Assembly (NCBI GenBank): GCA_029953675.1
Contig: JAMWBK010000005.1
Location: 992,001-1,056,000 of the forward strand
Reading direction: 5' to 3'
DNA from: Rhodosorus marinus CCMP1338
Lineage: Eukaryota > Plantae > Rhodophyta
Length of the DNA stretch: 64,000 nucleotides
The position numbers and the translations under genes were made by a program. The notes below the pieces were generated by a model that worked only from the letters and a program-made list of their open reading frames with translations, was not told the origin of the DNA and did no database searches. The stretch's first letter is position 1, and each line of letters opens with the position of its first letter. Below, one piece after another: positions 1 through 26,989 of this stretch.

Positions 1-69
1 GCGCATCCCTAGCACTGCATTCAGTAGTTGGAGTAAACGGTAAAAGGTGGAGTAAACGGTATAAGCTTG

Positions 70-108
70 CTTTACGCCCTGCATAGCGCTTAAGGCTATG
101 TTAGTGAA
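70..108 (+). mobile_element. Isolated 3' tail of non-LTR retrotransposon family A
   Basis: ctttacgccctgcatagcgcttaaggctatg matches the family A 3' UTR (tttcacgccttgcgtagcgcttcaggctatg) seen at about 8300, 9150, 10300 and 20130. Confidence 0.6.
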
Positions 109-559
109 ACGATAGTGGACCGCTATTCAGGCTTTGAATAAATGGATGACACAAATGTCCCGGAGTCAATCATGCGAAGTCGTTTTACTGGGGAGGAGAG
201 GACATTCAAGAGCAGCAGATCCCCGAGATTTCCGGGATATTTGGTGTCGGGCCGGGTTTGTCCATCTCGGCATCCCCTATCGGTCCGCGTCGTTCGTGGA
301 GGGTGAGTTGTCGCAGATTCTGAGTAAGCACCGGCGGCTGGTCTCGGAGCTCCGTCGGCTTCCTAGTGGCTTCCTCAATGCTCGTTGTTGCTTCATCGAT
401 ACTGTTTAAGTGAGCGGCTCACCTGTTGGTTCCGCTCGCTCCCAACTTACAGGGGCCGGTGGCTGACAACTCGTGCCGACGGCGGGAGCTTTGGTGAGCT
501 CGGATATTCTTAGATGAGGAACTGGGTTATCTTCCGCGCCCCACCCATTATGTCGTTCC

Positions 560-1865
560 CAAGTGGGCCTTCCCCTACGTGTGGGCGGTCTAGGCCTCTG
601 CAGCCGAGCTGCTATTCAACCAGCGGCCGTGGTCGGGTCTTGGGGCACCGCCTTCCCGACGTTGAGCGCGTTGGGCGTGTCCAGTTGCCTTGTTTTGGAG
701 GTCAGTCTTTCCACTGATGATCTACACTCTAGTGTCCCTGAAAGTACCCGTGGTTTGTTTCTCGAGCTCCAGTCGGCGGTCTCATCCTGTACCAGTCTCC
801 CTGCCGACCTGCAACCACGCCTGGCTGGCTGGTGAGCCGTTTTTTTTTGCGAGCTCGCGGCCCCCCGACCCGAGAAGCCGCCGGTCCTGTTCCTGTGGTG
901 GATGAAGAAACGGAGGTCCCTCGCGATCCTCCGGATGCTGGACTGGGCTCTGGGAGTTGCGTTTCCGCACGCACGGATGCGCTGCAAAACACTCTTTCTT
1001 GGGACTTGTACCGTGCTGCTTGTGGCCGACTCCTTTTCCAGTGCCCGCGCACGCCTGCGAAGTCTGGGGGGCTGTCTCGGCTCTCAATGGCTCACCAGAG
1101 TTCCAAATTTTCCACCCCTCACGCTAGCGTTTTTTTGACGTGCGCACTTCCCTGCGCTTGTATCTAGGATTGCATCAGCCGCCCTCGCCTTCCGAGATCG
1201 GTTCGCCCTGCACTATACGCTCTCAGAACGAATACACCGCGGATTTCGGCGCTCACCTGCTCGCCAGTTGCCCGCCTGTGAAAGGCGCCCGAACCCGCCG
1301 ATATACGCGGATCTTGAACCAATTGTACCGCGAACTTCGGCGTGTAGTACTGCAAGCCGGTCTTGAAATTGAACGTGAGAAGCCCCTGCCTGGCGCAGAC
1401 TACGACAATAACGAACCTCAAGTGGCTGGCCTCGTGGTCACCTGTGACGATAGCCGCCGTACGACGTAAGTTGATCTTGCTGTTCCTAACCCTCACTCTA
1501 GTCGTTATTTGCCGGCTACGGAAGAGCGCCTTGGATTTGCCGCTGCCATTATGAGAGGTCTCGAAGAGGTGAAATATATGGGGGCTTTATCTTCCCCAGG
1601 CATTCGTGCTTCGTCTCTAGCTCATTACCTGGTACTTCTGGTCACTGAGTGCTTTGGATGGATTCCGTTGGTTCTCGTTGGCTTCGGGAGTTGTTCCGCG
1701 GACGCCCTGACCGTCTATCCTCGTTGTTTATCCGATAACGTTTCTTGCTGTGGCGTACGAACGCTGCTTTGATGTTGGAGGTGCGCGGTCTTCGCCGCAA
1801 CATAGTCCGTTTTTCCTTTCAGGGTTTCTTCTTTCAGTCTCCGATTAAGCAGATTCATTCAATGT
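560..1865 (+). mobile_element. 5'-truncated RLE non-LTR retrotransposon, family B (thumb, CCHC knuckle, RLE, 3' UTR), frameshifted
   Basis: Reads ARLRSLGGCLGSQWLTRVP..LRLYLGL..CTIR..FGAHLLASC..RTRRYTR..VAGLVV..(Y)VDLAVPNP..VKY; ends in the family B tail cagtctccgattaagcagattcattcaat. Confidence 0.8.
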
Positions 1866-1924
1866 AACATAGGAAGAAGAAGATTGAAAATCCTATCAAT
1901 AACAGTGATTGATTGAGGAAATTA

Positions 1925-2235
1925 GTAGTTTAATCTGAAAGAAAAAACCCTGAAAGAAAAAGGGACTAGGCGCGGCAAAGACCCCTCGCCTCCAACTTCA
2001 AAGCAGCGTTCATACCCACGACAAGAAACATTATCGGGTAAAAAACGAGGAAAGGCGGTCAGCGTGTTCGCGGAACAACTCCCAAAGCCGACGAGAACCA
2101 ACGGAATCCATCAACCCATGCACCAAATGACTAGAGATGCCAGGCGATGAGCTAGAGCCGAAGCACGAGTGCCTGGGGAAGACAAAGCCCCTGCATATTT
2201 CACCTCTGCGACATGTCAAACTAGCAGCGCGCCGC
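1925..2235 (-). mobile_element. Family B 3' fragment, tail-to-tail with the copy at 560-1865
   Basis: Minus strand reads GLMDSVGSRRLWELFREHADRLSSFFTR, followed by the family B 3' UTR. Confidence 0.75.
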
Positions 2236-2493
2236 ACTCTCTGGCATTGAGGAATATCGGACGTCTCTGAGTCGTATCGGACTGAACCCGTTTTTAATTT
2301 TAAATTCAAGGCTACTACACCTATACCGGACACATGCCGGATGATAAAGCACCTAATTCTTGGGAATTTCAGGTCCAATTATCTTATATCAGACTGTCTG
2401 ATAAATATTGGACGGTTGTTTTGATATCTGACGGAGATGACAATCCTACTAGGATCCCGTGCAAGTGTACCGGAGAATCAAAGCAGAATTGTC

Positions 2494-2980: not shown

Positions 2981-3105
2981 CGGTGGAGGGTACCAAGCTC
3001 AACCCACCGCAAGAGGGTTGAGGAGGTGTGAACTGGCAGCTGTGGGTTTGCTGACAAGACCGGGTGGTGATAGAGCGGGGAACTTGTCAACGGAGTGGCG
3101 GAGAG

Positions 3106-4488
3106 ATGGCCATGATGGTGGTAGGGCTGTTGGTTCTGGGCTTGTGCCTGGGCAGTGGGGTTGGGTCTGAGTCTACGGTTAATGAGCTGGCGGAGGGCAG
3201 GCAGGCTGTGAGGAGGTGTAAAGCGGACTATTCAGACTTTGACAGGATTGTAGACATTCCAGGACTGTCGATCGTTCCCAGCTTCCTGGGGGACGCTGAT
3301 CGGACTCTTGGGCAGATTCTGGTGCGGTCGATGTTCAACGAAGATTTCAACAAGCTCAAGTTCGAAATCAGGATTAGGGAGCGGTTTGCCGTGAAGAGAG
3401 TTCAGACCTACGCGTTCCGAAAGCCGTGCGATCAGGTGCGTGACCAAGACTACTCGCACGTCGCCAAGGAGATCTACTACGGATCAGGAAAGCAGAATGT
3501 GAAGTCGTACTTCAACCTGGACACGCTGCCTTCAAAGGGCGGACTCAGCTGTTGCAGACTGTGCTTTTACTTCCAGGCGCTGTTCTACGACTCGGACGGG
3601 AAGAGGGTGCGGATCACTGAGGAGAGCATAAGGACTGAGAATGGCTACGTGTGCAAGGTGGGAGGACGTGACCGAATCTACTGCGATCTACCCGATATCT
3701 GCGTGAACATCGTCCACGGAACTAGGGGGGACGACGTGATCCATGGAACTGAAGGTAGAGATTACATCTACGGTCTGGACGGAAACGACAAAATCTACGG
3801 GAAGGGCGGAGACGATGCTATTCACGGCGATGACGGCGATGATATGATCTTTGGTGGAGAAGGCGACGATGTGATCCACGGTGGTTACAACGATGACATG
3901 ATCTTCGGTGGAGAAGGGGACGATCGATTGGACGCCGGCTATGGCTATGATCGTCTCTATGGTGAGGGTGGCGTGGACTATCTTAGAGGGGGAATGGGGA
4001 ATGACTACCTCAAGGATGAGTCAGACGATGGACCCGAAGGCGAGTTTGACAATATATTTGTTAGCAACTACGGAGCCGATATTTTCATTGGTGGAGCGGG
4101 TGATGACTCTATGTACTCGAGACGCGGCAACCATGTTATGAGAGGGTATGGCGGAGATGACAGAATGTTTATTCTCTACGGAGGAGGCAGCTTTTACGGC
4201 GGTGATGGTGACGATGTGATCATCGGCGGGCTAGAATATGACATAATCGAAGGGGGAGCTGGAAACGATCGTCTGGAGGGCGGGGCTAGTAGAGACCATA
4301 TCCACGGCGGGCCTGGTGACGACGAACTTCACGGCAACCGCAAGGGCAGGATAAACGATGGGGATGGCGACTATCTCTACGGGGAGGAAGGAGACGACTA
4401 TCTGACCGGCGAGAAGAATCGTGACCTGCTTGACGGAGGTTCGGGCAATAATAAGTACTTGACGGAGGACGGAATGTACTATGGCTGA
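3106..4488 (+). CDS. Secreted protein: signal peptide, Cys-rich N-domain, about 25 RTX/hemolysin-type Ca-binding nonapeptide repeats
   Basis: Intronless ORF (track 3064-4488; likely ATG at 3106, MAMMVVGLLVLGLCLGSGVG). The C-terminal half is GGxGxDxL-type repeats (FGGEGDDVI, RGGMGNDYL, EGGAGNDRL, HGGPGDDEL). Confidence 0.85.
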   Translation: MAMMVVGLLVLGLCLGSGVGSESTVNELAEGRQAVRRCKADYSDFDRIVDIPGLSIVPSFLGDADRTLGQILVRSMFNEDFNKLKFEIRIRERFAVKRVQTYAFRKPCDQVRDQDYSHVAKEIYYGSGKQNVKSYFNLDTLPSKGGLSCCRLCFYFQALFYDSDGKRVRITEESIRTENGYVCKVGGRDRIYCDLPDICVNIVHGTRGDDVIHGTEGRDYIYGLDGNDKIYGKGGDDAIHGDDGDDMIFGGEGDDVIHGGYNDDMIFGGEGDDRLDAGYGYDRLYGEGGVDYLRGGMGNDYLKDESDDGPEGEFDNIFVSNYGADIFIGGAGDDSMYSRRGNHVMRGYGGDDRMFILYGGGSFYGGDGDDVIIGGLEYDIIEGGAGNDRLEGGASRDHIHGGPGDDELHGNRKGRINDGDGDYLYGEEGDDYLTGEKNRDLLDGGSGNNKYLTEDGMYYG

Positions 4489-4840
4489 GCCTTTTGCGCT
4501 GCTGGACGAGTTCGAGCTGGACGAAAAGCGCTTCCAGGGTTTCAAACCGCATCGTCGCGCTTCTGTGCGAGTGTGTATGACTGCACAAAGACAGCGGTGT
4601 ACAAGCACAGGTGAGCAGAAACATTGTGGTGGGTGTTTCGGCTACGAGGGTTCGCTGGGATGTCGATGTTCGAACAGCTGGCCGAGGCTGAATCCACCCA
4701 CCGCTATCCATCCAGCTCTTCTTCATATGCAAATAAACGAAAAATCCGATTTTCCCTTTCCTAAATTCGATGGTACTTGCTTCTTGCCCCTGCCAGCAAG
4801 CACCAGATCTCGTGCGACATGCTGCAGTATATGCGGACGA

Positions 4841-5028
4841 AGACCCTTGGAAGGATATAGAGTAGTGGGTGGTTTTATTATCATAGCCTGAAGCGCCACG
4901 CAGGGCGGGAAAGGGAACTAGGAACTAGGGAGCGCCGAGACCCTTGGAAGGATATAGAGTAGTGGATGGTTTTATTAGCATAGCTTGAAGCGCCACGCAG
5001 GGCGGGAAAGGGAACTAGGAACGAGGGA
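4841..5028 (-). repeat. 97-bp-period tandem duplication containing the family A 3' tail
   Basis: agacccttggaaggatatagagtagt..catagcctgaagcgccacgcagggcgggaaagggaactagg starts at 4841 and again at 4938. Confidence 0.85.
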
Positions 5029-5029
5029 G

Positions 5030-6500
5030 AGAAGCGTGCAAACCCAGGCGGCGATGGCGCGCCGCGGCAAGCATGCTGACTAGAATATCGCCGGAGAGCG
5101 ACGCTTCAACGGTGTAGGAATCCCAGACATTGGTGGTTTTACTAAAATGATGCGCCAGGCAAGACGTAAAAGGGAACTGAGGAGAAGAGCATGCAAGCCC
5201 AGGCGGCGGTGCGCGCCATCGGCGAGAATGTTGCTAGAATCCCGCCAGAGAGCGACACATAAACGGCGAAAGGGCACCAGATATTCTTCTCGGCGAAACG
5301 TTTGCGCAGCCACTCCAAGCTTGAATTTTCCAGATACCCAAAGCTTTCCAGAATGAAAGGCTGGAACCTGTGAGACCGGCCAACTTCCCGCGGAAGACCC
5401 GCCGTGCTCTCAGCGTACCGTCGTTCCTTCAGGCGGGCGGCGAAGTACAGAAGCTGCCGCCCCCCCTGCGGACGCGTCAGAAGGGAGATAGTTACCGGAC
5501 ACGGGGCAACTCACAGCGAGGTCCACATATGCGAGCGCCGGCGGCTGCGTCCGATACCAGGAGATCTGCGATGCAACGAGGAGGGGTGGTTGCGGAGGGC
5601 GTTCGGCGTTCGAGGCAGTGCCGATTCCACCTCGACCTTGTAGCCAGTTCTTGTCAAGTGTTTGCTCAGGATGCATTTCAGGTGCGTGTGTGTCTTCGTG
5701 CGATGACCTCGCAGCAGTCTACACGAGCCCAGAAAATGGTACCCACGTCCGTCGATACGGCTCGCATAACCTTGGCAGAAGGAAGGGCGATTGAATGCGA
5801 AGGGGTCTGTGGCAAACCCAGGTAGATCCGTGCCTCGGTCCGGAACTGGAAGGCGTCCAGTCTCTAGGCCGGTGGCCAGGGCAGAGTGGTTAGCGTAGGT
5901 GGGATGGATGAACTCCCATGCCCCGTGGAGAAGCCGCGGTGGTAGGCGCTCTAAGTGGAGAGTTGAGCAAGATTGCTTGAGCAGCACTGTGTTTGCCGTA
6001 GGAGAGATATGTTGGATCACATAGTGCCTGAGATCGACGATCTGCTCATAACCGGATAATCGGCTTTGTTTGACCAGGGGCTGCTTCCAAATCGTCGGCC
6101 ACGATTAACCGTAGATTCCACTAAAACCTCATTGTGACCCCATAGCTCTCCCTCCAGGAATTGAACTTTGATCGATTCTCTTCCGGTACAGCATTACACT
6201 GACGAAACGCCTGTTGCAGGCCGTCATGAGTAGAAGTAGGAGTGTTGGCGATGGCTATTCGTACCGAACCCGATGTTCTAGGAGTAGGGGACACTCCAAG
6301 TTGCCAAATGGCTATTCCTACCAAACTCGATGTTCTAGGAGTAGGGGACTCCAAGTTGCTTGCAAAGGTGCAGAAGAACTGTGTACGTGAGAAGGTAATT
6401 TCTTCATACATCTTGGTCCAAGATCGCTGTGGAAGAGTGTACGTTGGAGACCATAAAGGCAAGTTATCTGCTGGGCGGGTTTCGAGGTATTTCTCTTGAT
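5030..6500 (-). mobile_element. Decayed family A fragments (RLE region and thumb region)
   Basis: Minus strand reads YHFLGSCRLLRGHRTKTHTHLKCILSK..VEVESALPR and HDGLQQAFRQCNAVPEENRSKFNSWRE, homologous to the 20311-21660 protein. Confidence 0.7.
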
Positions 6501-6514
6501 TTTGACAAGCTCTT

Positions 6515-6845: not shown

Positions 6846-6859
6846 TCTTGAGTTAGGCG

Positions 6860-7716
6860 CCTGTCCAACCCTACGATGAAAGTCTCGAACAGCCGGCATC
6901 GTCTTTGTTCCCGTTCGTCTGACGTTGACGTGCTCCCTGAATTCGCGTCATTTTTGGACCGTCCGGAGTTGGCCAGGTTCCGTATCGACCTGACGCTCCG
7001 AGAGTCTGATTTTGAGGATTTGCTCCGGACCTCCCGTCGTGGACGATGCCCTGGACCCTCCGGGCTACGAAAGGAATAGTTACAGGCCTTAAGCAAGCCC
7101 GGCCAGAGCGCATTTGTGAAGATCCTCAATACGCTGTTCCAGGGTCCAGGGGGTGCGTCTGCCGCGTGAGACCATCTGCGACGGGCACGGCTTTGCTTGC
7201 TAACGAAACCCGACCAGCAGCCGGCACACCTTCGTCTCCGGCCGATCGGTATGGTCGAGAGCCTACGGAAGTTAGCCGGGAGGTGGCTATGCCAGCGCCT
7301 TCGCCAGCGGGTCACAGCTTTTATGGCACCTTTGCTGGTGGGGGTGGGATTTTCCGGGGGCTGCGAGCTGATCACCAATGCGATCGAGCTGGAGCGAGCC
7401 AGTAGGACGGACTGGGGAGTTTTGGTCGTTGATTTTCGGAACGCATTCAACGGCGTCTCGCGTACGCATGCGTTAGAGGTGATTCGCCGCTTTTTCCCGG
7501 AGGCGCGGGCTTTCTATCCTGTCTTTACGGAGGGGGTAGCAGAGCCTACCCTACTTGACAACGACGGGCACAGTTTTTGACGCACATACGGGAGTCCATC
7601 AAGGCGATCCTTCTGGGCCTGTCCTACACGCCTGTGCCTTGCAGCTTGTTCTCCTGCGTCTTGCGACTGAGGTGCCGGATCTTCCTATCTGCGCCTATCA
7701 CGACGACGTAACGTAG
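6860..7716 (+). mobile_element. Decayed reverse transcriptase fragment (domains about 0-5) of a CRE-like non-LTR element
   Basis: CPGPSG, LRPIGMVESLRKL, VGVGFSGGCE, VDFRNAFNGVSR, then after a frameshift GVHQGDPSGP..CAYHDDVT; contains stops and frameshifts. Confidence 0.85.
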
Positions 7717-9200
7717 CTGTGGCCACCACTTCTTTGGTTCATGCGGACTGTTGGGAGATCTTCGTACGAGGCGTCACACTCGCTTCAAGTATATCCTCAG
7801 CGAATGTTTGAATCGAGTAGGGCACACGCGTGAGGTAGAATCGGGACTGCCCAGATCGGTCCCGGACACGGCGCCGCCCAGCGATACCCCAGATCTCCTC
7901 GTCTCCGACACTGCCGCTAGACGCTCAGCATATGTGGAGCTCGCGATCACACGCCCTGTGGCAAGCGCCCATCTCACTGCTGCCGCACGCCGCCGGGGGG
8001 TCAGCCGCGTCGGCCTTTCGTCCAGTGAAGGAACGACGGCATGCTGAGAGTATGCCAGTCTGCCTCGCGCAAAGGGTCGCTCCCACCGGCTCCAGCCTTT
8101 CATTGTGGAAAGCTTTGTTCGCGTGGAGTAGTTGGGTTTTGAGTGGTTCCGGAAATGTTTCACTGAGCATCCTGTTGAATACTTGGAACTCTTACGCCGT
8201 TTAAGAGTCTCTCTCTGGCGATAGTCTAGCAGCACGCTTGCCGAGGCGCGCCATCGGCGCCTGGGTTTGCACGCTTCCCTACCTAGTTCTTAGTTCCTTT
8301 TCACGCCTTGCTTAGCGCTTTAGGCTATGCCAATAAAAACTAATCTTGCTCAACTCTCCCGTCATATCGCCTACCACCGCCGCTCGCCTCCGCGGCATCG
8401 GAGGCACATTGTCGCACTTGTGGTTAACCACGCTGCATTCGTCACTGAGTCACCGTCTCGATGCCTTTCAGTTCCGCTCTGCTGCAAAGATCTATCTGGG
8501 TTTGCCACAAGCTCCGTGGCACTCTAATCGGCCGTCTTTCTGTCAGGGATGTGAGGGTCGGATCGATGCTTGTGGTTACCGCTTCTTAGGTTCATGTGGA
8601 CTGTTGAGAGGTCTTCGTACGAGGGTTCACACTCGCTTCAAGTACATTCTCAGCGAATGTTTGACTCGGGTAGGGCATACGGTTGAGATGGAATCGGAAC
8701 TACCCAGATCGGTCTCGGATAGGGCACCGCCCCGCTGTCTCGCAGATCTCCTCGTCTCCGATGCTGCCGCCAGACGCTCAGCATATGTTGACCTCGCGAT
8801 CACATGCCCTGTGGCAAGCGCCCATCTCACGGCTGCCGCCCGCTGCCGGGGAGCAGCGGCTTCGGCCCTTCGTCGCGTGAAGGAACGACGATATGCTTAG
8901 AGTATGGCCAGTCTGCCTCGCGTTGATGGTCGCTCCCACCGGTTCCAGCCTTTCATTGTGGAAAGCTTTGGTCACGTGGAGAAGTCGGGTTTGGAGTGGT
9001 TGCGGAAATGTTTTACTGAGCATCCTGCTGAATACTTGGAACCTTTGCGGCGTTTAAGTGTCTCCCGGCGGCGATATTCGAGTACCATGCTCGCCGAGGC
9101 GCGCCATAGGCGCCTGGGTTTGAACGTTTCCCTACCTAGTTCTTAGTTCCTTTTCACGCCTTGCGTAGCGCTTCAGGCTATGCTTATAAAGCCAATAAAA
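7717..9200 (+). mobile_element. Two head-to-tail family A 3' portions (about 7717-8340 and 8345-9200)
   Basis: RTRRHTRFKYILSECL..PDLLVSD..YVELAITRP; CQGC..GYRFLGSC..ADLLVSD..YVDLAITCP..KERRYA; both end in ggctatg followed by an A-rich aataaaa stretch. Confidence 0.85.
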
Positions 9201-9942: not shown

Positions 9943-10500
9943 ATTGAATGAATTTGTTTAATCGGAGACTGACAGAAAAACCCAATTATTAGTTCGGGGG
10001 GCAGCAGCTTCTGTACTTCCCCGACTGAAGGAACGACGGTATGCTGGGAATATGTTTTCCACGCGCAGAGGGCCGTTCTCATAGGTTCCAGCCTTTCATT
10101 GTGGAATGCTTTGGTCATCGGTAGAAGTCCAGCTTGGAGTAGCTGCGGAAATGGTTTACGGACCATCCAGTTGAATGTTTGGGACTCCTGCGCCGGTTAA
10201 GTGTAGATGTCAGGCGATATTCTAGCAGCATGGTCGCCGAGGCGCGCCATCGTCGCCTGGGTTTTGCACGCTTTTCTCCTTAATTTCTAGTCCCTTTCAC
10301 ACCCTGCGTAACGCTTCAGGCTATGCTAGCCAATCCATCCATCCAGTAAATCCATCCCGAAGAATGTCTGGTGCTCCTCCGCAGTTTAAGTGCCGCTCGC
10401 TGGCGTTCTTCTAGCAACATGCTTGCCGAAACCTGCCATATGCACCGCCTGGGCTTGCATGCTCTTCTCCTAGTCCCTAGTTTCGTTTACTTCTTCCGTA
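9943..10500. mobile_element. Cluster of short relics: B tail (-) at 9943-9982, A fragments (+) at about 10000-10330 and 10345-10500
   Basis: Direct nucleotide similarity to the B tail and to the A RLE and 3' UTR. Confidence 0.7.
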
Positions 10501-12893: not shown

Positions 12894-13047
12894 TAAACAA
12901 CTTTCTCCCAACCAAAGTCTGCCCACTACCAGCTCCTCGAGTCTACTAGCGGGCATAGCCCGTTGAGGGCGTCCTTTCGTCATAGCTTTCTTCAGCGCCC
13001 TGCACTGTGGTAGATAACACCTGTGGTGTTGTCTGAGCATCTATACG

Positions 13048-14010: not shown

Positions 14011-14139
14011 ACCCCGTAGCCTTTATTCGGCAGCTACCTACCGCAGCGCAATACCACTACTATACGTTCGCTCTAAACTCACTTGGACAATAGATGCACT
14101 CTTACTAAGCCATTTTTAGCTTGAATCTACTGGGGAGGA

Positions 14140-14420
14140 GCCCTTCCCTACATGTCTGAGCGGGGTGAAATTTTGAAGCATACACAGGGGTACAACAAGG
14201 ATCCCTGTCGGCTGGTCCTTCACGCTTGTGCCTAGCAGCTCGCTCTGTTGCAACTCGCGACCTCGATGGAGGACCTACGTATCTGTGCAAATCATGACGA
14301 TGTGACGTTGATGGGTAGCCCTACGGAATTAGATCCGGGTTTGACCTGGATCCAAGCCATTGCAAGTGAGGCGGGGTTGATAGTCGAGCCGGAGAAGTGT
14401 TGTTTTCTCCCACCACCGCT
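14140..14420 (+). mobile_element. RT domains 5-7 fragment of a CRE-like element
   Basis: GVQQG..LHACA..MEDLRICANHDDVTLMG..EAGLIVEPEKC. Confidence 0.75.
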
Positions 14421-17376: not shown

Positions 17377-17419
17377 ACAAACAAGTAAACTTGCCTATAG
17401 CACGCAGAGGAAAAACTCA

Positions 17420-18480
17420 GGCCCAAGACTAAAGCGCCTCAACGATCGTGACCAGTGCTAGGAACTAGGACCTGCACCCAACTCAACTTGTACACTCGCT
17501 GGGTCAGTTCAAGACCACAGCTGGGCCATCTTAGCTACCGTCCTACCTCTTCGCGTCTGGGCTCTGGTCAGCGCCCTTGGAAATGGGCATGTATCACCGC
17601 ATCTACGGATTTCACTCAGCAGCCACAGGTGGGATGGGGACGTCCTATACGGTGTAGACTATCCGCGGTTGTGAGCGGTATGAGTGGAGAGTTGATCAAG
17701 ATTGCGTGAGATGCACTGAGTTGGCCCCAGGTGTTGAATCAAATCAGTGCGTGGGCTTCACGTTCTGTTCATATCGGGGTAATCTGCCGTGGGTGACCCG
17801 GGACCTGGCTTCCCCATCGTCGACCAGCACTCGGTCGATCGTAGATTCAACGACGACCTCATTGCGTCCCAATAACATCTCCCTCCGGGAACTAAGGTTA
17901 GACCGATTTCCGTCCGGCACTTCATTGCATGGGCTGAACGCCTGTCCCAGGCCATCATAGATACTCAGCAGTGGGGGTGGAAGAGTGACGGGGTCCTCGG
18001 TGGTCAGTGTCGGAGTGGAAAGGCAGCCACAGCCTAACCGAAAGTTCACCAAGGCACGAAGGGCGGTGGCCCCGGATGCTACCGCCCCAGGGGAGCATAC
18101 AAGACGCCGGTCTCCAACGCCAAATCTCCCCAAGCGCGGTTGCAGCATGCCGTCAGGAAGGCGCTCAATGACATCTATCAGTTGTCAGTGCTGTGCCAAA
18201 ACTCGTTCGCGGGATGCTTGTACGAAGCTATCACGCCCCAGCCCAATGCCATGTCTGAGAGCAGCGGGCAGGCAGTCCGCCGGGGCCTCACTGGAAGAAA
18301 ACACACTTCGCCGGCTCAATGATCTACCCCACCCTGCGTGGAAAGGCTTGAATCTGGGTCAGCCCGCGATCAGGGTCGTCGGGGTTGCCCATCAAAGTGA
18401 CGTCATCGTGTAGGGGCAGATACGGAGATCCGCCATCTCAACCACGAGTCGAACGCGTTGGCAAATCTCAAATAACTTGA
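17420..18480 (-). mobile_element. Decayed family A-like segment (RT 5-7 and thumb)
   Basis: Minus strand reads MADLRICPY(T)MT.., LGRFGVGDRRLVCSPGAVASGATALRAL, TEDPVTLPPPLLSIYDGLGQAFSPCNEVPD. Confidence 0.75.
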
Positions 18481-18709: not shown

Positions 18710-18799
18710 TCTACACTTTCTACACATTCTACACTCTCTACACTTTCTACACTTTCTACACTTTCCACACTTTCTACACTTTCTATACTTTCTACACTT
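18710..18799. repeat. 9-bp tandem repeat (TCTACACTT)x10, i.e. (AAAGTGTAG)n on the minus strand, with degenerate flanks to about 18900
   Basis: Ten consecutive units, four with a single substitution. Confidence 0.9.
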
Positions 18800-18904
18800 T
18801 CCTGCTTTCTACAGTTTTTACATTTGTCTCACGTACACTTTTTACGTTTCGCTTTTTTCTACCCGTTTTACTCTTTGTACACTTCCTCACACTTTTTCGA
18901 ACGA

Positions 18905-19940
18905 ATGGTTTAATCGGAGGCTGAAAAAAAAAAATACCCGAGGGGAAAAAAAGACTAAGCGCGGCGAAGTACTCGCGCCTCCAACATCAAAGCGGCATTC
19001 ATGCGCCACAGCAGGAAACTTAAGCGGGTAAACAACGATTGAAGACGGTCAGGGCGTTCAATACAGAGTGGAAAAGTTTTTACACTTTTCCACTCTGTAT
19101 TGAATGAATTTGTTTAATCGGAGACTGAAAGGAAAAAAACCCCGAGGGGAAAAAAAAGACTAAGCGACGAAGATCGCGCGCCTCCAACATCAAAGCAGCG
19201 TTCATACGCCACAGCAGGAAAATCAAACGGGTAGACAACGAGGACAGACGGTCAAGGCGTTCGAGGAACAATTCCCGAAGCCAAGGTCCGAGAACCAACG
19301 GAATCGAGAAACCCAAAGCACTCAGAGCCAGAGGTACCAGGCGAAGAGCTAGAGACGAAGCACGAATGCCTGGGGAAGACAAAGCTGCCGCGTATTTCAA
19401 CTCACCGTATCTAAGGTCGACTGGCCATAGAATTATCCGTTTACCGATGGACGTTATCCAAAACACTCCAAGAGCCTCTTCGGAATAGATAAGATATCAG
19501 GGGTTCTCAAAAGCGAGGAACTTCATGTAGTTTGGTGGTCATTGACCCCCCAGCTCTCCACCCTCTATACGCTGGTTTCTGAGCTTTCCTTGAATTTGCT
19601 CAACCGCAGACTGAAGAAAAACCGAAAAGGGGAAAAAAACACTTTAAGCGCGGCGAAGGTCGCGCGCCTCCAACATCAAAGCAGCGTTCATACGCCACAG
19701 CAAGAAACATTATCCGGCAAGCAACGAGGAGAGTCGGTCAGGGTGTCCACGGACAACCCCCAAAACCAACGAGAACCAACGGAATCCAGAAATCCAAAGC
19801 ACTCAATACCCCGAGGTACTAGGCCTTGGGGTTGAGTCGAAGCAAGAATGCCTGGGGAAGACAATGACCCCCCGCATATTTCAACTCTTTGCGACGTCTC
19901 ACACGGGCAGCGCCAAATCCACGGAGCTCTCCCGCCGCCG
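18905..19940 (-). mobile_element. Three head-to-tail 5'-truncated family B copies (about 18905-19056, 19100-19400, 19590-19940)
   Basis: Each ends in the B tail; 19100-19400 reads LKYAAALSSPGIRASSLALRLVPL..RLSSLSTRLIFLLWRMNAALMLEAR. Confidence 0.85.
19057..19104. repeat. Perfect 21-bp inverted repeat with a 6-nt loop at the junction of two family B copies
   Basis: ttcaatacagagtggaaaagt-ttttac-acttttccactctgtattgaa. Confidence 0.9.
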
Positions 19941-20109
19941 GTTTGCATAGCGCTTTAGGCTATGCTATTAAAGCTTAGTAAAGTACACTATTAAAGCCAG
20001 TTTATAGCGTTTTAGGGTTTACACTTTTTTGGATTTTTTTTTGCCGTTTCTTGCACTTTTATGCACTCGTACTTTTTTATGTGGTACTACTCCAACTGGG
20101 AACGCCGCC

Positions 20110-22790
20110 CCCTTTACTGGACTTTACTAGCATAGCCTGAAGCGCTGCGCAAGGCGTGAAGATGAACTAATAACTAGGGAGGGAAGCATGCAACCCCAGG
20201 CGCCGATGGCGCGCCTCGGAAAGCATGTGGCTGGAATATCGCCAAAGGGAGACACTTAAACTGGACTTTACTAGCATAGCCTGAAGCGCTACGCAAGGCG
20301 TGAAGATGAACTAATAACTAGGGAGGGAAGTATGCAACCCCAGGCGCCGATGGCGCGCCTCGGACAGCATGTCGCTGGAATATCGCCAAAGGGAGACACT
20401 TAAACGCCTCAAGAGCGCCAAATATTCAGTAGGATGCTCAGCAAAACATTTCCGCAACCACTCTAAACCCGACTTATCCACGTGACCAAAGCTTTCCACA
20501 ATGAATGGCTGGAACCGGTGAGAGCGACCCTCAGCGCAAGGCAGACTGGCCATGCTCTCAGCATACCGTCGTTCCTTAACTCTTCGAAGGGCTGAAGCCG
20601 CGGCCCCCCGGCGGCGGGCGGCTGCGGTGAGGTGGGCGCTGGCCACGGGGCAGGTAATCGCAAGGTCCACATATGTTGAGCGTCTGGCAGCAGCGTCAGA
20701 GACGAGGAGATCGGCTATACAACGGGGCGGTGCAGAGTCCGAGATGGATCTGGGCAGTTCCGACTCAACCTCAACCGTATGCCCTATTCGAGTCAAAAAT
20801 TCGCTGAGGATGTACTTGAGGCGAGTGTGACGCCTCGTACGGAGACCTCGCAACAGTCCGCAGGAACCCAGGAAGTGGTAGCCACAAGCGTCAATCCGGC
20901 TCTCACATCCCTGACAGAAAGACGGCCGATTAGAGTGCCACGGAGCCTGTGGCAAACCGAGATAGATCCGTGCGGCAGAACGGAACTGGAAAGCATCGAG
21001 ACGATGACTCAATGACGACGGTAGAGTGGTTAACCACAAGTGCGAGAGGTGGCCTCCCATGCCGCGGAGACGAGCGGCAGTGGTAGGCGGCGTGAGAGGA
21101 GAATTGAGCATGACTGTGTGAGCGGCACTGTGTTGGCCCCAGGTGAGGCTATGTTGAATCACATCAGTGCGGGAGCTCCACAATCGGCTCAAACCCGGGT
21201 AGTCTGCAACAGGGGACCCGGGGCTAGCCTCTCCGTCATCGGCAAGAACTCGGTCGAGGGGACAATCCTCAATCGCTTCAGCTCGTCCCCATAACAGCTC
21301 CCTCCAGGAACGAAAGCGGGACCGATTTGCGTCCGGCACGGCGTTGCACCTCCTGAACGCGTGTTGAAGACCATCATAAATTGTCAAAAGCGGGGGCGGC
21401 AGGCTCACTGGATCCTCGTTGGTCAAAGCTCGAGCCAAGAGGCAGGCACTTCGCATCTGGAAGGTCACCAACGTTCGCAGCGCGGTAGCCCAGGAGGCAA
21501 CCGCCGCTGGCGAGCATACCAGCCCACGGTCTGCGACGCCGAATCCCCCTAATCGCAACGGTAGAGCGATCTGTGCACGAATAAAGTCCCTGTCGGGAGC
21601 AGCTTCAAGATCGAGGGGCTCATCCAAGAGCGTTCCCCAGTGTTGCAGGGTCATTTCGTCGGCTTTAGCCGACGAAAAGCCCTGCCGTTTCTCCCGGAGA
21701 CAGGAAATTGCCCGAGCAACGGTCAAAATCGAAGTGCAAAACCACCTGCGGGTTGCAGCGCAGCCACCGGGCGCTCTCAGGCCACTGCTCGGTAGGCTTC
21801 GCCAGCAAGGCCTCCAGGTACTTGGCGGCGGTTGCGGAGACCAAAAACAGCACATCGCGGCCCTCATAGTTTGCGAAGAAGAAATCACCCCGGCTGCACC
21901 CTAACGATTCCGCAAAAGTGTCCCGGAAATCTCGCATAGACGGAACCTGTCCTCGTGTAGTCTGGGGCCGGACATTTCGCACCCACAGAAATTGGAGAGT
22001 GGTCTCCACAGGTCCATCCTGAGGCTCGCGAGATGGTATGAAACGGAGCATAGCCGCCGTACGTGTGGCAGTGGTGCCCTTCCGCAAGACTGATGCGTAC
22101 GAAGCGCCCCCCTTGCGGCCACCACGTGCCCCCGAAGTAGCCGGGAGCTGGTGACGACCTGAGGGCTGGTCCAAGAGAGGGAAGTCCACAGCTGCAGTCT
22201 CCTCCACACCGGTTGCCGCACAGTCACCACCACCATTGCCTCGAGTCCCCGAGCGCTGAAGCGCGTTTTGGCCCGGCCTGCCGCTCCCCAACGTCGTACT
22301 GTCCCGCGCAGAAGCAACAGCCCTCGCCTGTCCCGGGACAGGTTCATGTTGATTGACCGGATGTTGACTGCCTTCAGCCAACGCTGCCACTCTGGGGCAA
22401 TTCAAATTCTCGTCCGAATTTGAATTTGACCTGGCCAGCAATCCCGATTCCAGCCCACCTAGCTTCTGGGTGAGCTGAGGGAGCACTCCACGATCACTCG
22501 CAGCCGTGATCAGGCTGGTGACAGCGGAGATAAGTGAACGCGCCTGGGTGCCAGAAGCGCCTTCCAAGTCAACCTCGGAAGAAAACGTGCCGCAGCTGAG
22601 GCGAACACGGAGTCCCCCACCTGGCAGTGCCTCCTTGGGAGGAGGCTCCGTCGAGTGCGGAGATATCCCTACCATCCTGAGGGAATCCGCCAAGGAAACG
22701 TTGCACCACCAATATGAAACCGCACCGAGAGAATAATCGACCAAACCCAACCCAAATAGGAAAGGCCCCGCAACTCACCCACCCCACTTA
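20110..22790 (-). mobile_element. Internally deleted family A element: N-terminal ORF, thumb, CCHC, RLE and duplicated 3' end; RT core missing
   Basis: ORF 21665-22750 (contains SYASVLRK) stops exactly where thumb coding starts (QIALPLRLGGFG). Open frame to 20311 with CQGC..HFLGSC, RTRRHTR, ADLLV, YVD, KERRY, FQPFIVESFG. About 143-bp tandem duplication of the tail at 20118-20403. Confidence 0.9.
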
Positions 22791-23530
22791 AACGCCTCAA
22801 GAGCGCCAAATAATCAGTAGGATGCTCAGCAAAACATTTCCGCGACCACTCTAAACCCGACTTATCCACGTGACCAAAGCTTTCCACAATGAATGGCTGG
22901 AACCGGTGAGAGCGACCCTCAGCGCAAGGCAGACTGGCCATGCTCTCAGCATACCGTCGTTCCTTAACTCTTCGAAGGGCTGAAGCCGCGGCCCCCCGGC
23001 GGCGGGCGGCTGCGGTGAGGTGGGCGCTGGCCACGGGGCAGGTAATCGCAAGGTCCACATATGATGAGCGTCTGGCAGCAGCGTCGGAGACGAGGAGATC
23101 GGCTATACAACGGGGCGGTGCAGCGTCCGAGATTGATCTGGGTAGTTCCGACTCAACCTCAACCGTATGCCCTATCCGAGTCAAAAATTCGCTGAGGATG
23201 TACTTGAGGCGAGTGTGACGCCTCGTACGGAGACCTCTCAACAGTCCGCAGGAACCCAGGAAGTGGTAGCCACAAGCGTCAATCCGGCTCTCACATCGTG
23301 GACAGAAAGACGGCCGATTAGAGTGCCACGGAGCCTGTGGCAAACCGAGATAGATCCGTGCGGCAGAACGGAACTGGAAAGCATCGAGACGATGACTCAA
23401 TGACGACGGTAGAGTGGTTAACCACAAGTGCGAGAGGTGACCTCCCATGCCGCGGAGACGAGCGGCAGTGGTAGGCGGCGTGAGAGGAGAATTGAGTGTG
23501 AGCGGCACTGTGTTAGCCCCAGGTGAGGCT
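22785..23530 (-). mobile_element. Near-identical duplicate of the CCHC-RLE segment at about 20397-21130
   Basis: About 730 bp almost identical to 20397-21130; truncated at both ends. Confidence 0.9.
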
Positions 23531-23559
23531 ATGGTGACCCCCTTTACTACAACCCTAAC

Positions 23560-24125
23560 CTCTCTGGTCATTGAGTACTTTGGGTTTATGGATTCCGTTT
23601 GTTCTCGGTGGCCCCGGGAATTTGCTCCGCGAACGCCCTGACCGTCTGTCCTCGTTGTTTACCGGTTCAAGTTTCTTGCTGTGCCGTATGAACGCTGATT
23701 TGATGTTGGAGGCGCGCGAGCTATCTTCAGTCTTTTCTTTCCCCTCGGGGTTTTTTCTTTCAGTCTCCGATTGAGCAAATTCATTCAATCCCTTTTACTA
23801 TAAGGGAAAAAAAAAAAGGTAGGCGCAACGCCCTGGAGGGGTACCACACAAAAAACCACGAGTGTAAGAAAGCGTACAAAGTTTAAAACGCTAGAAACTG
23901 AACGAAGTACTTTAAGAATGGAATTACTTTAATCGGAGACTGAAGAAAAACCCCGAGGGGAAGAAAAAGACTAAGCGCGGCGGAGATCGCGCGCCTCCAA
24001 CGTCAAGGCAGCGTTCATACGCCACAGCAAGAAACTTTTACCGGTAAACAACGAGGACAGACGGTCAGGGCGTTTATGGACCACTTGACTTCGAGAACCA
24101 ACGGAATCCGGAAACCCAAAGCAAG
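23560..24125. mobile_element. Two family B 3' fragments tail-to-tail (+ 23560-23790; - 23920-24125)
   Basis: IEYFGFMDSVCSRW.. and the B tail appear on each strand. Confidence 0.8.
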
Positions 24126-24329
24126 GAGTTGATGGGATGGGCGATAAAAAAAAAGGGGGGGTAACTCCACCTCCTATATTCCACCAGCGCGGGCAAATGC
24201 GAAATATTGCCGCGATATTCCCCAGCCCGGGGTGGGCAATTCATTCGCATAAAATTGGAGCCCCCCTCCCCGCTTGGGTCCTTCCTAGGGGACCGCGCTC
24301 TACCTTCCCACATCTGTACAACGTCATGG

Positions 24330-24640
24330 TGCTGTCGCTGGTTCAATGCGATGACTGAAGGAGTCTCAGTACGCAGAGGCGATGAGGCTCATCCAACCTT
24401 GCGGGACTCGGCGCTGTCCTATCGGTTTGTACCGTGATCATCGAGTGCTTTCGTCTGTTAGACAGTTGTGCTTCTCGCTGGCTTGGACGCGTTTTTCGCA
24501 CCGCCCCGGCCGTCTTGACACGTTTGCACGGAGCAGTCTCTGACTCTGTTACGTTCGAACGCTTCTTTTTTTTTGGCCGCGCGCCATCAGGGTCTCCCCT
24601 TCCGCCTCTCCGGGTAGATAGACTGTGAAAAAGTTTGTTG
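24330..24640 (+). mobile_element. Family C RLE fragment
   Basis: KESQYAEAM..PTLRDSALSYRFVP..IIECFRLLDSCASRW, homologous to 48030-48640. Confidence 0.7.
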
Positions 24641-25039
24641 TTGTTGATTGGCGGTGGGAGGTGCTACCGCCTATCCTCTGCGAGGGCCTGTTCCATGATC
24701 TCTCCGCTCTCCGTCCGGGTGGTAACCGCCTACCAGATTGCCTCCTCGGGCGTCCTCGGTCGTACTGAACTTGTGTAAGCTCGAGTTTTTTGTTCGGAGA
24801 CCACGACCCTGAGAGGAAGAAGGTTTGACTAAACCAAGGCACACTGGCGAGGTGCAGTCCAGCAAGAATCTGTCGATGAAGAGGGCTAGCTTGCCATTGG
24901 CTGAACTTTATGCAAAAGGAAAAATGCTACCTGAAGAGATTCCTTGGAGGTCGAAAGCGCCTGGTGAGCTGGGACGGCTTCACTTTGGGATCCAGCACAA
25001 ATTGGTTTGTAGCAACGACCTCCAATGATGGTGCAACAC

Positions 25040-25290
25040 GGGCGTATATTGTGCTCAAATACAAATCGCTGAATCAATGGTTTGACTTCAAATATGCTCA
25101 GCGATAACGATAAAGTATCTGGATGTCTTCACAACAACGAAATGCTTCGTATTGTCCCTGAAGCTAATCCACATCAGCCATGATGTCCAACGGGTTTGTC
25201 CCAATTGACGGGAATTACCGGACAGCGATTTTCGATTGGGTCCGGTGGGACTATGCGAATAATTCGTATGTACCGTCCTTCCGAAGCGCG
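25040..25290 (+). repeat. Unidentified dispersed repeat (family D), decayed coding-like sequence
   Basis: ctcaaatacaaatcgctgaatcaatggtttgacttcaaatatgctcagcgata..atccacatcagc..ccaattgacg aligns with the minus strand of about 37500-37800. Confidence 0.7.
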
Positions 25291-25744
25291 AGGAGAGCTT
25301 TCTACACCTAGAGAATACGTCAGTGAATGGTGTGGGCCTCGATATGCTCCGTCATCGTTCAGCACGCTGTGGCCGTAAGTTGAGAAGGCGCTGACGCTGC
25401 ACATACTCGCCCTCTCCCGAGTGGCTGACCACATGTTCTGAAGGGCAAAATTGAGAGGGCCGACACTATCTAGTCCTACCGCGTAGGCTAGCACTGGCAG
25501 CTCTGCTTGAGGAAACGAGCGTCAAAAGTCTTACTGAATACTAGATCTCAACTCATCTTGTACGTCGTCCACACAAAGCGTTCCCTGTGGATCGTTTTGA
25601 TATTCATCTATTCGGGATTGATGATCGCGTGTTGGACCCTCCTCAAAGCGGCCGGGAAGGACTCCGAAAACCCTCTCATTGCTTACCCAGCTCCACCTCC
25701 AATGAACCCTTTAAGCCAGAGATCCAATCCCTTCCATCAATCCC

Positions 25745-26220
25745 AACGCCGCGTGGCTGATCTCGTGGTCACCTGTGACGATAGCCCTCGTACGACGTAC
25801 GTTGATCTTGCTGTTCCTAATCCTCAGGCTAGTCGTTATTTGCCGGATCTGGAGAGCGCCGTGGAGTTGCCGCTGCCAGTATGAGACGTCGCAAAGCTTT
25901 GAAATATTCGGGCGCTCTGTCTTCCCCAGGGATTCGTGCTTCGGCTCTAGCTCATCGCCAGGTACCTCTGGTCATTAAGTGCTTTGGGTTTATGGATTCC
26001 GTTGGTTCTCGGTGGCTTCGGGAACTGTTCCGCGAACGCCCTGACCGTCTATCCTCGTTGTTTACCCGTTTAAGTTTCTTGCTGTAGCGTATGAACGCCG
26101 CTTTGATGTTTGAGGAGCGCGGTCTTCGCCGCGCTTAGTCTTGTTTTTCCCCTATAACCATTCATTCAAGAAGGGGGTTTTTTTCTTGCAGTCTCCGATT
26201 AAACCAATTCATTCATTCAT
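25745..26220 (+). mobile_element. Family B 3' portion, the last element before the gene-dense zone
   Basis: RRVADLVVTCDDSPRTTYVDLAVPNP..LKYSG..IKCFGFMDSVGSRWLRELFRERPDRL; tail aattcattcattcat. Confidence 0.85.
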
Positions 26221-26989
26221 CTAAAATCTTCAGTCATTTTACAAAAAGAATCTCCTTCATTAAGAGTAATAAAATATCTCCATATTACAATCTTATCTCC
26301 ATCACTCCGATTATTTCTATTTTACTAGAAGTTCCTCAATATCCATGGGGATAGGTGATACTCAAGGTAAACAGAGTGCTTATTTATGGTACTAAGGAGA
26401 TATCCATTTTCTCCCTTTTTTTAGTAGTATTCTGTCCCACGGTGACGTGTGTCACTGGTCACAGGAAGGGGGTGAGCTGTCCTCAAGTCTGGGGACGTTT
26501 GCCCTCCATGGGAAGCGATTATACAGATTTACGAAAACTTTCTTTTTGAAAATGCGCTCATTAAGGCTATTTTGATCTAAAACTAGATTTAATGGATTTT
26601 TTTGGAGGGATAATGTTCTAGAATAGGGAACTTTTTGCCTGGATAGTGATGGTGCTGGAAGGGTTGGGGTTGCCATTTTCCTTTAAGATAGAAAGAGAGC
26701 CTATGAAGGGCAGCGACCATTTCTTTGGTTGGGGAGGATGGGAACGAAGTGTTGAATTGGTTTTGAAAGGCTTTAGAAAGGGTATATCTTGAATTGTTTC
26801 TTTGTGGTGGAGGGGCGGGATCCAGGAGCGCTGGGCAAGTTCTTTGGGAGGGAGGGCCTGTTTCGTGGCGGTGCGCCTTGGCTTGGCCGGGGACCAGGGT
26901 GGAGGGTGGACTTAAGGGGGTTATAGAGCCTTTGATTTGTTTTTTTGTTTGAGCAGCTAGTGTAGAGGGATCTTAGGGACTCGGAAAAG

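Follow-up and report, generated by a model that had tools for sequence, protein, structure and literature searches.

Why should three intact genes for predicted secreted proteins lie within DNA that consists largely of retrotransposon remnants? The window analysed here, 64,000 nucleotides of a nuclear contig of Rhodosorus marinus CCMP1338 (JAMWBK010000005.1, positions 992,001-1,056,000 of 3,187,197 bp), raises this question in its first 26 kb, where broken retrotransposon copies are piled up in the middle of a chromosome with three intact secreted-protein genes between them. The first-pass annotation correctly assumed a free-living alga as the host and compared the region with the repeat-rich subtelomeric compartments in which pathogens and protists keep surface and effector genes. 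However, the island is interstitial, lying 0.99 Mb from the nearest end of the chromosome-scale 3.19 Mb contig, about 31% along its length. The annotation itself had named such a position as speaking against its proposal. At this single locus, with one side of the island examined, the pattern is real but fairly ordinary.

Retroelement-derived DNA accounts for at least 57% of positions 1-26,300 and approximately 5% of the remaining window. DNA self-similarity covers 41% of positions 1-26,300 and 2.4% of positions 26,301-64,000; the values rise to 49% and 4.3% when tblastn hits obtained with 150 relatives of the element protein are added, and to 57.4% and 4.7% when protein-level self-similarity is also included. 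The matches merge into 20 intervals spanning 104-26,218. All 17 LINE 3' termini of the window (family A, 9; family B, 6 by motif; diverged, 2) fall within 86-26,211, the shuffled expectation being at most 0.04. Thus the more than 20 retroelement fragments reported before do form a dense cluster. According to the published figures, repeats make up 15.2% of the genome on average, and its 31.2 Mb contain 4,036 CRE-type LINE fragments, a density at which about 3.4 would be expected in 26.3 kb.

The island occupies positions 1-26,218 of the window, its fragments lying on either strand, and extends a further 5 kb or more leftward, to about -5,050; its left border lies beyond the DNA examined, and the total length is at least 31 kb. 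Several element subfamilies and one unrelated ORF are found upstream of the window start. On the right the island ends at about 26.2 kb, with the 3' terminus of its last LINE copy, a family-B fragment (25729-26218, plus strand, 3' terminus at 26187-26211). This border is as sharp as originally described: less than 0.8 kb separates it from a gene-dense, repeat-poor housekeeping block, the first gene of which is ENTH/epsin-like and contains introns (26990-28741, plus strand, 469 aa in 1,752 bp). The single clear retroelement copy noted in this block is a LINE fragment with the endonuclease domain (47922-48630, minus strand), accompanied by a small fragment at 37.45-37.8 kb. The genes of the block are indeed housekeeping-like and for the most part intron-containing, yet of the 10 complete annotated neighbours, 4 have no introns.

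The elements belong to the R2/CRE-like LINEs, which encode a restriction-like endonuclease (RLE). This class has already been published for the genome, where LINE/CRE is the dominant repeat class (9.04% of the genome in the RepeatMasker table). Searching 1.84 billion representative proteins with a 525-aa element ORF gave 502 relatives. In the long relatives RVT_1 is central and the domain of the ORF is at the C-terminus. The eight long relatives that were scanned matched no other Pfam families, and thus have no AP-endonuclease domain. A 25-sequence profile of this domain matches solved R2 proteins in their C-terminal endonuclease region (E 3e-11); its conserved positions are CxxC...HxxxxC, RH, E, D, D and K..KY. 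The reverse transcriptase (RT) of one relative is closest to R2.

Most of the 3' termini are attached to short 5'-truncated bodies, and no full-length copy was observed within the window. Tblastn and the 3'-end motif identify a family-B fragment with the RLE region and the 3' end (518-1864, plus strand, terminus 1857). Family-A pieces at 6918-9199 (plus strand) comprise an RT fragment (6918-7734) and two successive copies of the C-terminal RLE region with the 3' end (termini at about 8337 and 9190), and a 5'-truncated family-A 3' end lies at 9989-10495 (plus strand, terminus about 10333). Between the second and the third gene, self-similarity and tblastn reveal a family-B fragment (13250-14016, minus strand) beside an RT-like fragment (14140-14412). 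Three consecutive family-B 3'-terminal fragments are arranged head-to-tail at 18864-19971 (minus strand), with a family-A 3' end on the plus strand at 19950-19967. A family-A copy at 20113-21888 (minus strand) retains the open 525-aa ORF (20311-21888), which has the thumb, CCHC and RLE regions and lacks the RT, and bears a 144-nt 3' tandem duplication (20116-20405). A 361-aa ORF upstream of it (21665-22750, minus strand), without a family match, probably represents the 5'/N-terminal portion of this RT-deleted element. A second young family-A copy of the RLE domain contains a 300-aa ORF (22669-23571, minus strand), and 300 nt of it match the copy at 20397-20696 with 99% identity. Identity between copies ranges from 65% to 99%, indicating that insertion lasted long. 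About 70% of the LINE 3' termini adjoin another element fragment; 57% coverage predicts about this proportion, which thus gives no evidence either way on a preference for existing copies.

LINE clusters (Zepp-type) have been proposed as centromere markers in some green algae. The position of the island along the contig, its mixed element subfamilies, its few genes and the head-to-tail arrays of truncated 3' ends are all compatible with a comparable cluster forming part of a centromere or pericentromere. However, this is very improbable, as three intact genes lie inside, at least one of them transcribed in a related strain, and the window contains no satellite or AT-rich core. Moreover, with 4.7 Mb of repeats distributed over approximately 13 chromosomes, such islands must far outnumber centromeres.

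Seven ORFs in the island reach 200 aa or more: the three retroelement ORFs described above, one case of antisense noise, and three non-element ORFs. From at least -6.9 kb to 26,989 GenBank annotates these three genes and no others, so that the count of exactly three long intact ORFs stands. They correspond to the three largest non-repeat gaps (2982-4807, 10922-13249, 14413-17621), and element fragments occur 125-360 bp from their coding regions. As had been noted, all three are intronless and begin with signal-peptide-like segments; the 12-residue hydrophobic cores have Kyte-Doolittle means of 2.9-3.1, compared to 0.3-1.0 in cytosolic neighbours. The absence of introns is weak evidence, given the intronless neighbours. 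The GC3 of the three genes is inside the range of the neighbours.

Two of the genes had been described as encoding RTX-repeat proteins, and this holds for the first one (3106-4488, plus strand, 460 aa). Its product combines a predicted signal peptide with an orphan N-terminal domain (about 180 aa) and approximately 17 RTX nonapeptide repeats (Pfam HemolysinCabind, 8e-42). The structure model is rich in beta-strands, with pLDDT about 70 in the repeats, which are predicted to form a beta-roll. The second gene (11727-12893, plus strand, annotated as 388 aa) has the orphan domain and degenerate repeats, and no RTX match in Pfam even at E<=10. The two genes are distant paralogues (E 1e-6, 22% identity), so the duplication is ancient rather than ongoing. 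M26 (position 11802) is the more likely start of the second gene's signal peptide. The third gene (15790-17376, plus strand, 528 aa) encodes a predicted signal peptide, a full-length astacin domain (E 1e-37) and an EGF domain, as had been proposed, whereas the C2 domain is borderline, its score of 22.0 bits coinciding with the Pfam threshold. The third zinc-ligand histidine of the astacin domain is replaced by asparagine (HEIGHVLGLYN).

One possibility is that these genes were acquired horizontally, as bacterial RTX and astacin genes, and sit in a repeat-rich landing zone. Among the best 120 matches of the RTX protein, all those with a named source are bacterial or labelled RTX/calcium-binding, and all three genes lack introns. 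There are precedents in other red algae: 251 of 286 transferred genes of Pyropia haitanensis are reported to carry transposable elements (TEs; PMC11317521), and in Cyanidiophyceae transferred genes have been amplified in subtelomeres (PMC9812998). However, these 120 matches cover the repeat region only, at 31-46% identity, and similarity confined to repeats is poor evidence for transfer. The genes have native GC and GC3 values and eukaryotic-type signal peptides, no bacterial relative of the N-terminal domain was found among 5.8 billion proteins, and the best matches of the EGF module and the astacin domain among solved structures are animal proteins. Since, in addition, 4 of 10 neighbours are intronless as well, transfer seems improbable.

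Another explanation, which keeps the two-speed idea of the annotation and drops the subtelomere, is that CRE-LINE islands preferentially house environment-facing secreted-protein genes throughout the genome, with repeats promoting the turnover, duplication and altered regulation of these genes. In favour of this, the region has few genes and many repeats, and its three genes are lineage-restricted with predicted signal peptides; the two paralogues may represent a local duplication since separated by elements, and the elements approach the coding regions closely. A preprint reports that, across eukaryotes and whatever the chromosomal position, TEs co-locate with gene families for defence and for interaction with the environment (PMC10996525). 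On the other hand, the genes represent only two independent lineages, and thus the local pattern alone is insufficient to establish a compartment. The paralogues diverged long ago and their family has not expanded: among 5.8 billion proteins, the N-terminal domain common to both has one further match, the orthologue of the second gene in another Rhodosorus strain, and no other members were detected. This orthologue is colinear, expressed, and 87% identical at the amino acid level; dS is 0.50 and dN/dS is 0.13. Hence the one testable gene is under purifying selection, and is neither diversifying nor fast-evolving. Its transcript in the other strain has a family-A fragment in the 5' UTR, differing in place and orientation from CCMP1338, which is element turnover around a stable gene. 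We consider an adaptive compartment unlikely. Of the original reading, the accumulation of repeats, the scarcity of genes and the lineage-restricted secreted-protein genes remain, and the data lend little support to a subtelomere-like contingency compartment.

On balance, the region is probably an interstitial island of retroelement accumulation around a few dispensable, lineage-specific secreted-protein genes. It would have been built by many separate insertions of 5'-truncated LINEs of the dominant class, which carry a reverse transcriptase, a C-terminal CCHC motif and the RLE and multiply by target-primed reverse transcription. Insertions may have landed in the intergenic DNA that surrounds a small group of clustered, Rhodosorus-specific genes, and selection would have removed those hitting the three genes, which, together with 0.1-1.4 kb of flanking sequence, would thereby remain the only unique DNA of the island. 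The insertions could persist because the genes involved are small in number, dispensable or needed only conditionally, and tolerant of altered surroundings, whereas the dense housekeeping genes next door would leave no neutral space, creating the abrupt border. Insertion tolerance, rather than an adaptive compartment, would then account for the co-location. Against this accumulation scenario, signal peptides in all three genes exceed casual expectation, though two of the genes are paralogues. It predicts that secreted-protein genes are not enriched in such islands genome-wide beyond the effect of dispensability. The proteins may act in a calcium-rich extracellular matrix or mucilage.

The juxtaposition of a repeat-rich, gene-sparse block of secreted-protein genes and a repeat-poor housekeeping block is similar to the two-speed architecture of filamentous pathogens, proposed to be general (PMC10996525). 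Here, however, the host is a free-living alga, and the block holds three genes from two lineages, an unexpanded family and one tested gene under purifying selection. The subtelomeric gene-duplication regions of Cyanidiophyceae, also red algae, contain retroelement-related genes (in Galdieria) and duplicated genes for signal-peptide proteins, in that case of the kelch, trefoil and hint families; they lie no more than 20-30 kb from telomeres, are conserved between chromosome ends and carry many near-identical copies (PMC9812998), whereas the Rhodosorus island is far from the contig end and has two strongly diverged paralogues.

The elements resemble R2/CRE-type non-LTR retrotransposons in the central RT of their relatives, the C-terminal CCHC knuckle and PD-(D/E)xK-like endonuclease matching solved R2, the lack of AP endonuclease in the eight long relatives, the 5'-truncated copies and the RepeatMasker label LINE/CRE. 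Classical R2 and CRE/SLACS target one specific gene (28S rDNA and spliced-leader genes, respectively), whereas no common flanking target is seen at the LINE insertions of the island, and the window contains no rRNA, tRNA or other Rfam RNA genes.

Bacterial RTX proteins are exported through a type I system. The first gene shares with the bacterial beta-roll proteins the GGxGxD-type nonapeptides, the strong Pfam match and the predicted strand-rich repeats. It differs from them in the N-terminal eukaryotic-type signal peptide, the orphan N-terminal domain, the native codon composition and the location in a eukaryotic chromosome, and nothing indicates a toxin function. Compared to astacins (M12A) with EGF modules, such as tolloid/BMP1 and meprins, the third protein has the substituted zinc ligand, no propeptide separating the signal peptide from the mature start, and C-terminal C2-like modules that are unusual in the family. 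At the same time it retains the full-length domain, HExxH with its glutamate, the Met-turn with tyrosine (SVMQY), and the EGF module following the astacin domain.

The retroelement island at this locus is real, well delimited and of a known kind, and the three secreted-protein genes inside it are unusual but conserved. In a DNA self-comparison, repeats constitute 41% of window positions 1-26,300 and 2.4% of the rest; once protein-level self-similarity is added, the repeat-derived fraction is 57.4% on the left and 4.7% on the right. No repeat was seen at the protein level in 48.7-73.4 kb, that is, to 9.4 kb past the window end. A tblastn search with the best 150 of the 502 protein relatives of a 525-aa ORF, the open reading frame of one LINE copy (20113-21888, minus strand), produced 20 retroelement intervals between 376 and 26,129 and one more at 47,922-48,630. 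The 3'-terminal motifs of two LINE groups, family A (nine copies) and family B (six copies), and of two diverged copies all lie within 86-26,211, where at most 0.04 would be expected in shuffled sequence. In the published RepeatMasker table for Rhodosorus marinus, LINE/CRE is the dominant class, with 4,036 elements and 9.04% of the genome (PMC10250338). The genome average computed from this table predicts approximately 3.4 CRE-type fragments per 26.3 kb, and thus the left part of the window is about six-fold enriched and the right part is depleted.

On the right, the island ends at 26,211-26,218 with the 3' terminus of the last copy of family B, and the ENTH gene begins at 26,990. Upstream, the island reaches at least to -5,050 (negative positions denote DNA preceding the window). 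GenBank lists exactly three genes from -6,894 to 26,989, and these correspond to the three longest unique stretches between the repeats. This corresponds to three genes in 26.3 kb and none in a further 6.9 kb upstream, as compared to approximately one gene per 3-4 kb in the right-hand block; no gene is annotated in the 10 kb upstream of the first of the three, an RTX gene, back to -6,894. Locally, therefore, a repeat-rich, gene-sparse block adjoins a repeat-poor, gene-dense one, as in a two-speed layout. The first-pass annotation had proposed a TE-dense region of about 26 kb carrying three intronless genes with signal peptides, and a sharp border to housekeeping DNA with mostly intron-containing genes and one clear retroelement copy. 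As a description this stands: the single clear copy to the right is that at 47,922-48,630, and the remaining points agree with the repeat fractions, the 3' termini and the gene annotation.

The right-hand block contains genes encoding, by Pfam and annotation, an ENTH/epsin protein, a phosphoribosyltransferase, a protein kinase, Ku, a Myb protein, oligopeptidase B, an FAD-linked oxidase, a TPR protein, inositol monophosphatase and Skp1. Comparison of gene span with product length revealed introns in six of the ten complete annotated genes. The other four are the kinase, Skp1 and two small genes; since the intronless state is this common among the neighbours, it carries little weight. The Myb ORF is probably one exon of a spliced gene. 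A second, minor repeat trace in this block was observed just upstream of the Ku gene, where 37451-37811 contains a small fragment similar to island positions 25025-25178 (79% identity, opposite strand). Between the ENTH and phosphoribosyltransferase genes, a gene-free spacer of 2.6 kb contains two-copy tandem duplications at 29086-29436 and 30611-31066, with units of about 175 and 255 bp that are 76-81% identical; they are unrelated to the LINEs. Two stretches, 34001-36000 and 42001-44000, are AT-rich (GC 0.40-0.41 versus about 0.50 elsewhere). The former lies in a spacer with no called gene, and the latter is only partly covered by the annotation examined.

The 525-aa element ORF has 502 relatives among 1.84 billion representative proteins according to an exhaustive HMMER search; a word-indexed homologue search with the same query gave no match. 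In eight long relatives (844-1331 aa) the RVT_1 domain is central and the homologous region is C-terminal. No other Pfam domain was found in these eight proteins, which are relatives rather than a full-length copy from R. marinus, and an apurinic/apyrimidinic endonuclease is absent from them. An alignment of 25 C-terminal regions has the conserved pattern CxxC...HxxxxC, RH, E, D, D, K..KY, that is, a CCHC motif followed by a PD-(D/E)xK restriction-like endonuclease at the C-terminus. The profile of these regions matches the C-terminal endonuclease region of the R2 proteins 9nl2, 9nl3, 9dou and 8gh6 (E-values from 3e-11 to 1e-7), and R2 is also the nearest solved structure for the reverse transcriptase of a relative. 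The elements are thus LINEs with a restriction-like endonuclease (RLE). On sequence grounds they are R2/CRE-like non-LTR retrotransposons of the RLE type, a class already catalogued for R. marinus.

Almost all copies are 5'-truncated 3' parts, present in both orientations and with pairwise identity from 65% to 99%. Positions 6918-7734 are a fragment matching the reverse transcriptase of the relatives (tblastn, E-values down to 8e-17). The ORF at 7197-7580 has a weak RVT_1 match (E-value 0.0045, below the Pfam cut-off), the only sign of a reverse transcriptase by Pfam in the window, and no intact reverse transcriptase is present there. Full-length elements, RNA genes (rRNA, tRNA, snRNA and spliced-leader genes), satellites and telomere-like arrays are likewise absent from the window. 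Hence insertion into RNA genes was rejected. The 3' termini form head-to-tail runs (8337, 9190, 10333; and 19759, 19273, 19070), and their flanks have no obvious common sequence, although clean junctions are few. Self-targeted nesting as a demonstrated mechanism was rejected as well: approximately 12 of the 17 3' termini adjoin a further fragment, near the expectation from 57% coverage.

Several further features of the repeats were observed. The 3' ends of family A are tandemly duplicated in two places, involving the last 144 nt (97% identical, 20116-20405) and the last 97 nt (95% identical, 4841-5029), which points to slippage on the template, or to priming more than once, at the element 3' end. 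At 19950-20145 and 23759-23944, 3' termini of the same family lie tail-to-tail on opposite strands, 137-160 bp apart. The microsatellite (TCTACACTT)x10, with a 9-bp unit, occupies 18710-18801 inside the island and yields spurious plus-strand ORFs with 'FYT' repeats. In the DNA upstream of the window (L002), positions 4188-5225, or approximately -2,708 to -1,671 in window coordinates, contain an open 345-aa ORF with the motifs CxxC...HHC, RRHD, EQEPE, RPD, LDVTV and K..HYK. As this ORF belongs to a further, more divergent RLE-domain subfamily, several LINE lineages share the island. Another upstream ORF of 160 aa (L002 1211-1693, approximately -5,685 to -5,203) contains '...STTEAEYQSLGD...ADVLSKAL...'. 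It is reminiscent of the RNase H tail found in Ty1/copia elements but has no Pfam match, and LTR-element debris in the island is only a lead.

The three island genes lie on the plus strand at 3106-4488 (gene 1), 11727-12893 (gene 2) and 15790-17376 (gene 3). All are annotated without introns, and their predicted N-termini have the hydrophobic core typical of signal peptides, which is absent from the cytosolic neighbours. Their GC3 is 0.52-0.63, compared with 0.49-0.66 in the neighbours, and thus recent foreign DNA was rejected as their origin. This native composition bears on one possible reading, that the island is a landing zone for transferred genes such as those described for other red algae (PMC11317521, PMC9812998); we assign it a low probability. 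Two scans of metagenome_contigs found no orthologous transcripts of the astacin-like or RTX genes, but the peptide INYYFEYI of the known orthologue was also absent; the collection therefore does not contain the MMETSP sample, and these negatives carry no information. Clusters at 90% identity have no second-strain members for the astacin-like gene or gene 1, but none for the kinase or Skp1 either, and this negative is equally without weight.

Gene 1 encodes an RTX protein, with a Pfam match of 8e-42 over seven stretches and approximately 17 nonapeptides of the GGxGxDxUx type. Gene 2 had also been described as an RTX-repeat protein, and this did not hold, as it has no Pfam RTX match at E<=10. 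It is a paralogue of gene 1 (22% identity), with degenerate repeats and a common N-terminal cysteine-containing domain. The best database matches of gene 1 cover the repeats only, and every match with a named source is bacterial or labelled RTX/calcium-binding; the search with the full protein was swamped by bacterial repeat proteins and says nothing on paralogues. The common domain (about 180 aa; 3106-3720 and 11802-12470) has a conserved SCC..C and further cysteines. In the structure model of the RTX protein its pLDDT is about 50-68, too low for a fold search. Its profile has one match among 5.8 billion proteins, the orthologue of gene 2 in the product of an MMETSP Rhodosorus transcript, and no relative outside Rhodosorus was found in this set. 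The sequences thus define a candidate orphan extracellular domain, fused to a beta-roll. No large family of similar exchangeable copies of this domain was seen among the same proteins, and the local pair is divergent. A retrogene origin was rejected, as the RTX pair has no parent paralogue.

Gene 2 is colinear with the transcript of its orthologue from the other strain (L005), with no intron, 85% identity in DNA and 87% in protein. The orthologues have dS 0.50 and dN/dS 0.13. In this one gene and one other strain, neither faster evolution, nor positive selection, nor presence/absence variation was seen. In the 5' UTR of the transcript, nt 56-105 are a fragment of the family-A 3' region (86% over 51 nt relative to window 5029-5078, E-value 8e-9), in a place and orientation that differ from those in CCMP1338. 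Elements have apparently turned over around a conserved gene, and the fragment hints that they supply transcribed or promoter sequence. Within the signal-peptide region, the same MMETSP/JGI transcript is shifted by one base in a T-run. These data bear on the possibility that the architecture is adaptive and TE-compartmentalised, along the lines put forward as general in PMC10996525. The juxtaposition of a repeat-rich, gene-sparse block and a repeat-poor, gene-dense block is what such an architecture would look like, but gene 2, under the constraint described, is retained and transcribed in the other strain, and we consider this explanation improbable.

Gene 3 had been described as an astacin-EGF-C2 protein. 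The astacin domain (E-value 1e-37) and EGF are present, whereas C2 is seen only at the level of the Pfam threshold. At residues 119-136, HEIGHVLGLYNEFNRPDR, the third zinc-ligand histidine is replaced by asparagine in the alignment with tolloid-like 1 and another astacin, and so the signature HExxHxxGxxHxxxRxDR with three histidine ligands (MEROPS M12A) is absent. The catalytic glutamate is retained, as are Met and Tyr of the Met-turn (SVMQY; SxMHY in astacin). No propeptide separates the signal peptide from the mature start. Gene 3 is a member of the astacin family by homology, with its catalytic competence in doubt; its product could be a pseudo-protease or have altered metal binding.

R. 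marinus is a free-living unicellular marine red alga; the nuclear assembly of CCMP1338 (GCA_029953675.1) comprises 31.2 Mb with 15% repeats, 8,392 genes and 24,821 introns, in 13 large contigs, 12 of which have at least one telomere (PMC10250338). Contig JAMWBK010000005.1 is 3,187,197 bp long, and the coordinates of four genes give a single offset, with window position 1 at record position 992,001 in the same orientation. Thus 992 kb of the contig precede the window and 2.13 Mb follow it. Since the nearer end is 0.99 Mb away, the window is interstitial, and no telomere-like array was found among its tandem repeats. The analogy with the repeat-rich subtelomeres of other organisms, drawn in the first-pass annotation and open to exactly this check of contig position, does not hold. 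The proposed contingency compartment is left without its hallmarks: the shared N-terminal domain has not expanded into a family, and the single gene that could be tested does not evolve fast. A pericentromeric island, that is, a Zepp-like centromeric LINE cluster, is another way to read an interstitial concentration of LINEs, and we consider it to have little probability.

Passive accumulation is the most economical account of the island. The LINEs that dominate the genome would insert widely; insertions would be purged from the tightly packed housekeeping block, and would persist around a few lineage-specific secreted-protein genes with tolerant surroundings, the coding regions of these genes being kept intact by purifying selection. 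The locus is a clear and well-delimited example of the dominant CRE/R2-like LINEs of Rhodosorus piling up between genes, and it points to an unusual eukaryotic RTX-repeat protein pair and to an astacin-like protein whose zinc site is altered. We think it unlikely that R. marinus has genome-wide compartments in which islands of CRE-like LINEs are the specific home of orphan secreted matrix proteins encoded without introns (RTX beta-roll proteins with eukaryotic signal peptides, a zinc-site-altered astacin), with the elements supplying promoters or 5' UTRs and driving turnover of gene regulation. If the association of LINE islands with secreted-protein genes held genome-wide, this compact, 31-Mb genome would be a tractable system for asking whether repeats shape extracellular-matrix genes. 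Such an association would also show that TE compartmentalisation, described in pathogens, occurs in a free-living red alga.
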